In this document: piece after piece, positions 24,636 to 27,900 of the stretch
How the letters are laid out: each line of letters opens with the position of its first letter
Position numbering within the stretch: position 1 is the stretch's first letter
Source of the DNA: Thalia democratica
Lineage: Eukaryota
Reading direction: 5' to 3'
NCBI GenBank assembly: GCA_965202585.1
Contig: OZ241827.1
Coordinates: forward strand, 93,062,001-93,116,132
Length of the DNA: 54,132 bases
The notes under the pieces: generated by a model
What the model saw: the letters and a program-made list of their open reading frames with translations, nothing else
Told to the model about the DNA's origin: nothing
Database searches by the model: none
Translations under genes and position numbers: made by a program

Positions 24636-24709
24636 TTAATTCTATTGCCGGGGATTTTATTTTTTTATTCTACTGCGGGGATTTTGTGCTCTGCGATTTA
24701 ACATCTCTG
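24636..24709 (-). mobile_element. Truncated 74-bp inverted copy of the left end of the hAT-like element at 24971-28352
   Basis: Exact reverse complement of 24971-25044 (CAGAGATGTTAAATCGCAGAGCACAAAATCCCCGCAGTAG...GGCAATAGAATTAA). Confidence 0.9.
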
Positions 24710-24828
24710 GTGGACCCTACTATTAATTAGCTGTGTTACTGTTCTTAACAAAGTAACTTTCATGATAAATTAGACAAATTAAACAGTCTTTAAGTGTTTC
24801 AATTTACTGATTGTGATTTAATTTTTAG

Positions 24829-24970
24829 GTACTGTTGCTCTTTGTGAGATCCGTCGCTATCAAAAGTCAACTGAGCTTCTGATCCGCAAGCTGCCATTCC
24901 AGAGGTTAGTCAGAGAGATTGCCCAGGATTTCAAGACAGATCTTCGTTTCCAGAGTGCAGCCATCGGTGC
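24829..24970 (+). pseudogene. H3.3: Histone H3.3 paralog remnant, 5' part of the final coding exon (G44-A91)
   Basis: After acceptor TTTTTAG (24828) the frame reads [46 protein letters not shown]; same intron position as the intact gene; R49C substitution; interrupted at codon 91. Confidence 0.95.
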
Positions 24971-27900
24971 CAGAGATGTTAAATCGCAGAGCACAAAATC
25001 CCCGCAGTAGAATAAAAAAATAAAATCCCCGGCAATAGAATTAAAATTTCTTATGAAAGAAAAAGCTGTATTTTACAAGTTGAGAACATAAAAGTTTCAT
25101 ATATTCAATTACACCAACATATTTAAAACCATATTGTTTTTATAAATATGAATGCCTTAAATGTAAGTTTATGTTTTTTTATTTTCATAAGGTTAATTTT
25201 AGTCACTTTATTGTTAATTTAATCATAACTACCTTTTAACCTTATAGTTGTAGGTAATGTTTGGTTAGAAAAATTAAAGAAAAGTATCTTCCACTTATTT
25301 AAATGGTTAATAAACTAAAAACATTGTAGCTTTGAAACTAATTGATGTTAAGTTAATTTATTATTTGATTTTTTTTCTAAAAATTAGATGAAATAGACAA
25401 ATTTTTTTTTCTTATATCCTACTTTTATCAAATTATTTGAATTTTTAAACTTGAAAATAAAGTTTGATTATTATATTTTTTTAAGATTCATTATAAATTA
25501 TTTTATTAAGACATAGATTTCACTTAAAAGTAATTTGAATATAATTTATTATTTTTGTTTACAAACTTGAAACTACTATTTGCTAAGTAGAAGTCTATTT
25601 AAAATTTTTAATTTCTAATGTGGCAAATTTATTGAGTCTTTTTTTATTATAATTAGGTAATTTATCTAAAAAAAAATTATACCTGAAAGTTTTAGTGTAC
25701 AACTCAAGGTTTTTACAACTAGTTTTGTAAATTAAGCAGAGTTGAAACAAGGTCAGGAAAAGTCAGAAAACTCAGGAAAAGCAGAAAAAAAAGACAAATA
25801 ACAAGAATAGTAAGGTTTTTTTTAACAGTCAGGAAGTTTAACTAAATATTAAAAAATACCAGATTTTGTCAGTTTAAATTTACTGAATTCCTTATATTCA
25901 AAAACAAGTCTTTGAATGGTAAAGAATTAATTAAAATTCTTTAAAGTGTGATTAAAATTGAAAAAATTCCAAGAATTTTACAAAATTACTTAATTATCAA
26001 TGCCTTCATCTTGTAAAATTAAATGAATATCCTTTATAAAACTGCAAAATGTTTCTATTAAAATTTTGTTAAACTACCCTACTTGAACAGACAGTTTTTG
26101 TAGGCAGTATGATAATCTGTAGCATTTTTTAGTAAAACAATGATAATACACAAGAGTTTATCTAGCATACTTTAGAATTGAATTGTTTTTTGTTTAAGTA
26201 AATAAATAATTTCATTCTAATTAAACACTAGTTTTAGTGTTTTGGGTAATAAGTTTATGTTTATAATTTACCTCATTACAATTTTTTCAAAATTGTTTAA
26301 ATTTTTTAAATAAATTATAAAATAGGTGAATTTCATGGTTAAGTCTAATTATTTATAGTTTATTGTAGAATAGTTGTTTTTAAATATTTTTTACATAAAT
26401 AAAGGTAAAATATTTACTACTAATTTTATAATTATTGATAAGATGAAATATAAAATTGAAAGCTTTATTAATTCCTTTTATTAATATAATTTAATATTTT
26501 ATTAACAAACTTGAAACTACTATTTGCTTAGATGAATTCTATTTTAAATTTTTGATATGGCAAATTCATTGAGTCTTTTTTTATTATAATTAGGTAATTT
26601 ATTAAAAAAAAAAATTATATTTGAAAGTTTTAGTATACAACTCAAGGTTTTTACAACTAGTTCTGTAAATTAAGCAGACTTGCAACAAGGTCAGGAAAAG
26701 TCAGAAAACTCAGGAAAAGCAAAAATAAAAACAAGTAATAGGAATAGTAAAGTAAATCTTTTTTTGAAAACAGTCAGGAAAATTGACTAAATAAAAAAAA
26801 ATACCAGATTTTGTCAGTTTAAATTTACTTAATTCCTTATATTTAAAAACAAGTCTTTGAATGGTAAAAGGTTAATTAAAATTCTTTAAAGTGTGATTAA
26901 AATTGAAAAAATTTCCAAGAATTTTACAAAATTACTTAATTATCAATGCCTTCATCTTGTAAAATTAAATGAATATCCTTTATAAAACTGCAAAATGTTT
27001 CTATTAAAATATTCTAAAACTACCCTACTTGAACAAGCAGTTTTTGTATGCAGTTTGATAATCTGTAGCATTTCTTAAAAAAACAATGATAATACACATA
27101 AGTTTATCTAGCATATTTTAAAATTTAATTGTTTTTTTTTAGGTGAATGAATTATTTCATTTTAATTTAACACTAGGTTTAGTGTTTTGGGTAATAAGTT
27201 TATGTGTATAATTTACCTGTTTATAATTTTTTCAAAATTGTTTATATTTGAAAAAAAATTATAAAAGAGGTGAATTTCATAGTTAAGTTTAATTATTTAT
27301 AGTATATTGTAGAATAGCTGTCTTTTAATTTTTTAACATAAATAAGGGTAAAATATTCACCTCAATATGTTACATGCAATGTTTAATCTTTTCTCTAATA
27401 AATAGAACTGTTCTAGATTTTAAAATGTAGTTTAAAAATAAATTAATTTAAATTAAAAATTAATAATTTGCCAAAGTTTATGTTGCACTAATAACAAGGA
27501 TGAAAAATAGTTTCACCATTATTTTGAAAATTTTATTTATAAAAATAATATATATTATTAAATTTTAACTACATTTAAAAATCTAAAAACAATTTTTCAT
27601 TAACAATAAACTTGTTTTTAAAGCCTGGCGTTGGTTTAATTGTTCTATTTTTATAGATTGAATTTAACCAAAATTATTATGGCCCATTAAAAATTGTTGT
27701 TAATGAGAAATAAAAGAAAAAAAAAAGATTTTTAAGATCATAGGAGGATGAATATATTTTTTAACATTTTGATATTAATTTGTTTTTTTTTTATTAAGTA
27801 TAACCATATCATAAATATTTCAAAGAACTTTTCCTGAAAATTTTTAAATTTTAAAATTTAAAAACTTTTATAAATATATTAAGATGTTAAAACATTTAAA

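Follow-up and report, generated by a model that had tools for sequence, protein, structure and literature searches.

Facing left ends of a hAT-like transposon family in a disrupted H3.3-like gene copy of Thalia democratica

One copy of a large H3.3-like gene family in Thalia democratica has probably been hit by two insertions of a single hAT-like transposon family, the second in the opposite orientation, and has then been shortened by a truncating deletion. The copy is located in a stretch of 54,132 nucleotides (assembly GCA_965202585.1, contig OZ241827.1, positions 93,062,001 to 93,116,132 of the forward strand), which is termed the window below and to which all coordinates refer unless megabases are given. 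A repeat search of the window recovered an inverted pair at 24633-24710 and 24970-25047, the arms of which are 78 nt long, 99% complementary and 259 nt apart. Within this pair, 24636-24709 is the exact reverse complement of 24971-25044 over 74 nt, including a 7-nt homopolymer, just as an earlier sequence-only reading of the locus had claimed, and an additional chance pair between G at 24710 and C at 24970 extends the perfect stem to 75 bp. The same reading had described transposon termini pointing at each other across a 261-bp spacer, and the two CAGAGATG tips do face inwards across it. The 22-nt transposon tip was found at two places in the window, both in the arms, against an expectation of 0 from 100 shuffles.

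The features of the locus are listed below in their order along the window.

19236 to about 24628-24632, plus strand: upstream flank, collinear with paralogous H3.3-like units (BLAST against three paralogue units and a search of the species' own genome)
24633-24638, no strand: deletion junction, reading ATGTTA where both parents read ATTTTA (loci L068-L070 and the element sequence, compared base by base)
24639-24709, minus strand: stump of a second hAT-like left end, inverted (tip, terminal inverted repeat and both AAAATCCCCG motifs)
24710-24828, plus strand: intron remnant, the last 119 nt of the H3.3-like intron (every compared paralogue starts matching exactly at 24710)
24829-24970, plus strand: first part of H3.3-like exon 2, codons 44-91 (translation, 29 paralogues compared; unique Arg-to-Cys change in VALREIRR)
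24963-24970, plus strand: left copy of the 8-bp target-site duplication ATCGGTGC (single in the paralogue empty site)
24971-28352, plus strand: complete non-autonomous hAT-like element of 3,382 bp, long subfamily (target-site duplication, empty site and ends)
28353-28360, plus strand: right copy of the 8-bp target-site duplication ATCGGTGC (exon sequence continues from 28361)
28361-28496, plus strand: remainder of H3.3-like exon 2 up to the TAA stop at 28494-28496 (unique Ala-to-Pro change in SEAYL)

The host gene copy and its paralogues

The spacer was said to hold the 3' end of an intron followed by H3.3-like codons 44-91, and both the sequence and its translation bear this out, with the intron part at 24710-24828 and the coding part at 24829-24970. 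The host gene is a member of a large intron-bearing H3.3-like family, whose duplicated units exceed 12 kb and lie on the same chromosome, mostly 1.1-1.8 Mb away. In the translations of exon 2, VALREIRR is present in 29 of 29 paralogues and SEAYL in 28 of 29, and the window copy alone carries Cys for Arg in the former motif together with Pro for Ala in the latter. Over 1,184 aligned columns, twelve unique substitutions were counted in the window copy versus four in its closest paralogue. As regards the characters of a functional H3.3 gene, AAIG is present, but exon 1 is absent and exon 2 is split by the element. The H3.3-like copy at 24710-28496 can be regarded as a pseudogene.

Several further observations concern the histone genes and the surroundings of this copy. 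A second H3.3-like paralogue occupies 40890-41835 of the window on the minus strand, both exons being intact (exon 1 starts near 41835, exon 2 at about 41176) and the residues canonical, and a degenerate H3.3-like copy (L043) lies just past the window end. On C2, the interval 93.08-94.87 Mb (loci L032-L047) harbors at least 12 intron-bearing H3.3-like genes, of which nearly all have a perfectly conserved exon 2. Around the gene, these units are 98% identical to the window copy, and a few kilobases upstream the figure drops to 86% or 76%; this fall suggests that gene conversion may have acted around the coding part of the H3.3-like units. Elsewhere on C2, at 55.45-55.70 Mb (loci L052-L060), an intronless H3 array with AAIG was encountered, several members of which have DYKTD and a GERGA C-terminus and one of which (L058) contains an internal stop, and H3 genes with the SAVM motif were seen on C9 and C10 only (L055 and L056). 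Upstream of the inverted pair, an open reading frame of 126 aa on the minus strand (22120-22500) ends in a RING-H2 type zinc finger (C-x2-C ... C-x-H-x2-C-x2-C ... C-x2-C); it is the upstream neighbour of the gene copy and belongs to the part of the unit common to the paralogues. In addition, 33000-36000 of the window forms a GC-rich block, with 42-44% GC compared with about 20-30% in the other 1-kb bins.

The complete element and its family

The right arm had been read as a transposon left end, and 24971-25044 indeed begins a complete element of 3,382 bp. The closest paralogue (L032, 98% identical) has the two exon halves contiguous, and its two matches to the window overlap by exactly 8 bp, which is the signature of an empty site. 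Given this empty site, 24971-28352 is a 3,382-bp insertion flanked by an 8-bp target duplication. The left tip of the element bears CAGAGATG and the right tip CAGTCATG; the right tip, at 28330-28352, has a single occurrence in the window. The terminal inverted repeats are short and imperfect, in that the tips CAGAGATGTTA... and CAGTCATGTTA... both start with CAG and match at 10 of their first 13 positions. The subterminal motif AAAATCCCCG occurs twice in the whole element, and both occurrences fall within its first 61 nt.

No open reading frame longer than 51 aa exists in this copy, and the 29 sampled copies of the family are all non-coding relatives. For each of the two ends, hundreds of candidate copies with 98-100% identity were found in the 801-Mb genome, and such likeness indicates that the hAT-like family has probably been active recently. 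The paired end coordinates resolve into two size classes of about 2.4 kb and about 3.38 kb, both of which comprise many near-identical copies. An internal tandem duplication of about 945 bp (about 25553-27360, copies 82-94% alike) marks the 3.38-kb subfamily as against the 2.4-kb one. The 8 bases that precede the left tips follow a consensus of nTnnnnAn: of 24 left flanks, 19 have T at position 2 and 18 have A at position 7. Hermes has the same target preference (PMC10368747, PMC2803484). More than 1,500 candidates for the hAT dimerisation domain (PF05699) were counted in the genome, two of them in 657-aa open frames. Judged by its ends, targets and copies, the family of 24971-28352 is a young, high-copy, non-autonomous and hAT-like one.

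The element resembles Hermes, hobo and Ac (PMC10368747, PMC2803484) in its 8-bp target duplication and nTnnnnAn preference, as well as in its dissimilar left and right ends, its short imperfect terminal repeats and the concentration of subterminal repeats near the left tip. It differs from them in that the subterminal motif, present twice in 61 nt, is specific to the family described here, which is called hAT-like from its ends and target preference.

The second left end, the deletion and the history of the locus

The left arm carries the second left end, of which 71 nt are unambiguous element sequence, or 77 nt when the shared junction bases are included. When positions 22000-29500 of the window were compared by BLAST with six H3.3-like paralogue units, the match began exactly at 24710, the base after the inverted tip; the homology among the paralogues themselves extends at least 1.5 kb further upstream. 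Since the homology to the paralogues stops exactly at the tip, the joint CTCTG/GTGGACCC at 24709/24710, which is tip-exact with zero bases gained or lost, looks transposase-made, and we infer that transposase produced it. The 8-bp target beside the stump follows the family consensus on its tip-side half only (A at position 7, C at position 8) and has G, not T, at position 2, so that it offers weak backing for a true integration. The stump retains exactly the terminal repeat and both left-subterminal motifs, for which reason it may be speculated that bound transposase shielded it from degradation. When 1.5 kb of flank was inspected at 23 other left ends, all collected by an exact match to the tip, no inverted tip was seen at any of them, which argues that the head-to-head pair is a one-off accident rather than part of the family's design.

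The window is collinear with three paralogue units (pA, pB and pC) on both sides of a missing piece, which lies between the upstream flank and the intron and amounts to 4,327 bp relative to pC, 4,414 bp relative to pB and 4,794 bp relative to pA. Exon 1 (MARTKQ...RYRPG) belongs to the missing piece, together with its upstream region and about 365 bp from the 5' side of the intron. At the junction, the flank parent reads ...AGCATTTTATAAC, the element parent ...GAAATTTTAATTC and the window ...AGCATGTTAATTC; in wider context, the paralogue flank is tttttttAG(C/T)ATTTTATAAC, the element, read inwards from its position 74, is GAAATTTTAATTCTATTG, and the window is ttttttttAGCATGTTAATTCTATTG. The junction thus consists of a 6-bp microhomology with one changed base. 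Because the join falls inside ATTTTA, the joint of flank and stump is best read as a microhomology-mediated end join, which indicates that repair of this type probably operates in Thalia democratica. The G at 24635 is found in neither parent, so that a mutation after the join or an error during repair has to be assumed. A 6-bp filler AGCATG at 24630-24635 was also considered and was abandoned, as loci L068-L070 show AGCAT to be flank and place the join in ATTTTA.

The following course of events would account for the locus. A member of the multi-copy H3.3-like family would have been struck twice by the young non-autonomous hAT-like family. One insertion, kept intact at 24971-28352, would have entered exon 2; the other, placed 261 bp upstream in the intron and oriented the other way round, would have brought the two left ends face to face. 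The second copy would then have lost all but its first 71-77 nt, along with 4.3-4.8 kb of upstream flank, and the broken ends would have been joined at ATTTTA by microhomology-mediated end joining. The upstream copy of the target duplication and the right end of the second copy, the features that would prove a complete insertion, are absent, as the proposed deletion would have taken both; this counts against the account. At the deletion joint, the flank is attached to internal sequence of the stump, from which it follows that the second left end arrived before or together with the deletion, while for its order relative to the intact element the sequence gives no reading.

The loss itself might have taken any of three routes. 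In the first, the second copy was excised and repair of the gap from the sister chromatid was aborted: synthesis would have covered about 75 nt by the time the new end paired with ATTTTA far upstream. Abortive gap repair of excision sites was reportedly described by Rubin and Levy in 1997. The second route would be an incomplete (one-ended) integration that was repaired at once, and the third a later unrelated break. These three routes cannot be separated by the sequence.

A local re-insertion in opposite orientation, followed by a deletion, had been put forward by the sequence-only reading. The opposite orientation of a second insertion and a truncating deletion that includes exon 1 are supported by the paralogue comparison, whereas the local hop is unproven. 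The 74 nt of the arms recur without change in 20 of the 23 other copies that were sampled; any family member could hence have been the donor, and for this reason the identity of the arms was dropped as a sign of a local hop.

Two models that involve the resident element alone were rejected. The use of its own ends as a hybrid element or across sister chromatids predicts an inverted spacer or a plain deletion, and a one-ended attack of the resident left tip on its own flank predicts a second, inverted spacer rather than a second transposon end. Such one-step models are at odds with the observed order: the spacer has not been inverted, and through the target duplication it runs directly into the downstream exon.

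An unlikely explanation, albeit one that agrees with part of the junction, dispenses with a second insertion altogether. A 4.4-kb deletion would have been closed by microhomology-mediated joining of the synthesis-dependent type (snap-back or template switch). The polymerase would have taken the left end of the resident element, at a distance of 261 bp, as its template and produced an inverted copy of 77 nt. The 6-bp microhomology at the left junction, a template just 261 bp off on the same molecule and the odd G at 24635, which would suit an error-prone polymerase, all speak for it, and inverted inserts templated by neighbouring DNA are known to mark alternative end joining (PMC5728401, PMC2943611). 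However, the polymerase would have had to start precisely where the transposon starts, primed by a single base of homology (G at 24710, C at 24970), and it is on account of this start that template switching is held to be unlikely. If the start were placed at random over a few hundred bases, hitting that point would be a coincidence of roughly one in hundreds, whereas a transposase-made end accounts for the exact tip directly; moreover, 77 nt is long for such inserts.

Even less credible is an assembly artefact, in which both the upstream arm and the deletion would stem from a long read that was chimeric or folded back, or from a wrong join made through the high-copy transposon end. Hundreds of near-identical family copies do invite misassembly, but assemblers join via long overlaps, and the joints here are an exact tip and a 6-bp microhomology to unique flank; besides, both flanks are collinear with the paralogues, and the window has zero N bases and hence no N gap. 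Two insertions followed by a truncating deletion remain the preferred account.

Gene capture, small RNAs and known transposon systems

It had also been proposed that a histone exon between transposon ends could be a gene-fragment capture intermediate, and that a read-through transcript would fold into a perfect hairpin with histone sequence in its loop. The fold itself is upheld by prediction: an RNA reading through the locus would pair perfectly over 75 bp, in a stem that spans the terminal repeat and both subterminal motifs, with the histone sequence between the arms, and the arms plus spacer gave a stem z of -15 for RNA and -17 for DNA and an RNA energy of -190 kcal/mol. The capture reading did not hold up, given that the histone piece lies outside both elements, that two left ends are involved with their tips pointing inward, and that the genome search for further end-H3.3-end units, which the earlier reading had called for, found this unit a single time. 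Normal transposition cannot move the histone piece because the tips face inwards and both are left ends. With respect to Pack-type elements, the fragment lies outside the elements, it is present at one site only, and the paralogues are free of transposon ends.

It is highly improbable that the end-histone-end unit is a mobile capture intermediate or a hairpin locus feeding small RNAs against the hAT family, even though the predicted 75-bp stem would bring the terminal repeat and both motifs into double-stranded form and inverted duplications of transposon ends are known to trigger silencing (PMC3440606; 10.1101/2020.01.07.897926). Against it stand its single copy in the genome, the deletion of the gene's own exon 1 and upstream region, the minus-strand orientation of the upstream neighbour ORF and a stem far shorter than in the plant examples. 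One could still picture the left-end pair being transcribed, from an upstream or an element-internal start, with the 75-bp stem, in which both presumed transposase-binding motifs lie, seeding siRNAs or piRNAs that silence the young hAT family, yet we would give this scenario very little credence. The idea of a small-RNA source is weakened by the loss of the promoter-side part and exon 1 and by the position of the upstream neighbour on the other strand. If true, a small-RNA-seeding left-end pair would be an animal counterpart of maize Mu killer and of the Ac composite-insertion silencers, and it would bear on the first recognition of a new DNA transposon by animal genomes.

Mu killer is an inverted partial duplication of MuDR in maize, which produces a hairpin RNA by read-through from a flanking gene; this RNA is about 4 kb long, carries transposase coding sequence and is driven by the flanking promoter (PMC3440606). 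The locus described here is alike in being an inverted duplication with a transposon terminal region beside host gene sequence. It differs in its stem of 75 bp, in its non-autonomous element and in the deletion of the nearest promoter-bearing part of the host gene.

Further parallels are provided by the fractured Ac (fAc) and Ds-type truncated ends of maize, in which the exact tip is likewise kept at the host junction while the rest of the element is lost, and in which the internal break is likewise joined by short microhomology beside a flanking deletion. The stump here is 71-77 nt long, in contrast to those cases, and the loss runs on into 4.3-4.8 kb of flank; the host, moreover, is an animal, and the events are inferred. 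The alternative transposition of Ac/fAc (Wang et al. 2020, 10.1101/2020.01.07.897926) also involves two nearby hAT ends in inverted order, and in the Ac/fAc composite insertions both fragments likewise come from 5' (left) ends and form an inverted repeat. In those maize composite insertions the tips point outward, one target duplication serves as the border, and the fragments are fused tail to tail with kilobase-long arms (10.1101/2020.01.07.897926), whereas here the inward-pointing tips are separated by 261 bp of host DNA and joined to the host independently, without a shared duplication. Reversed-ends transposition uses one 5' and one 3' end (10.1101/2020.01.07.897926), whereas both arms here are left ends. 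On account of the inward tips, the separate joints and the two left ends, the locus is neither a product of alternative transposition nor its standard substrate.

The locus is an ordinary pseudogene scar of a known hAT kind, with no function implied, and reveals neither a new mechanism nor a new element type. Its value is that of an example, resolved to the base, of an active hAT family wrecking a redundant gene copy, for which the paralogues serve as a built-in record of the locus before the events.
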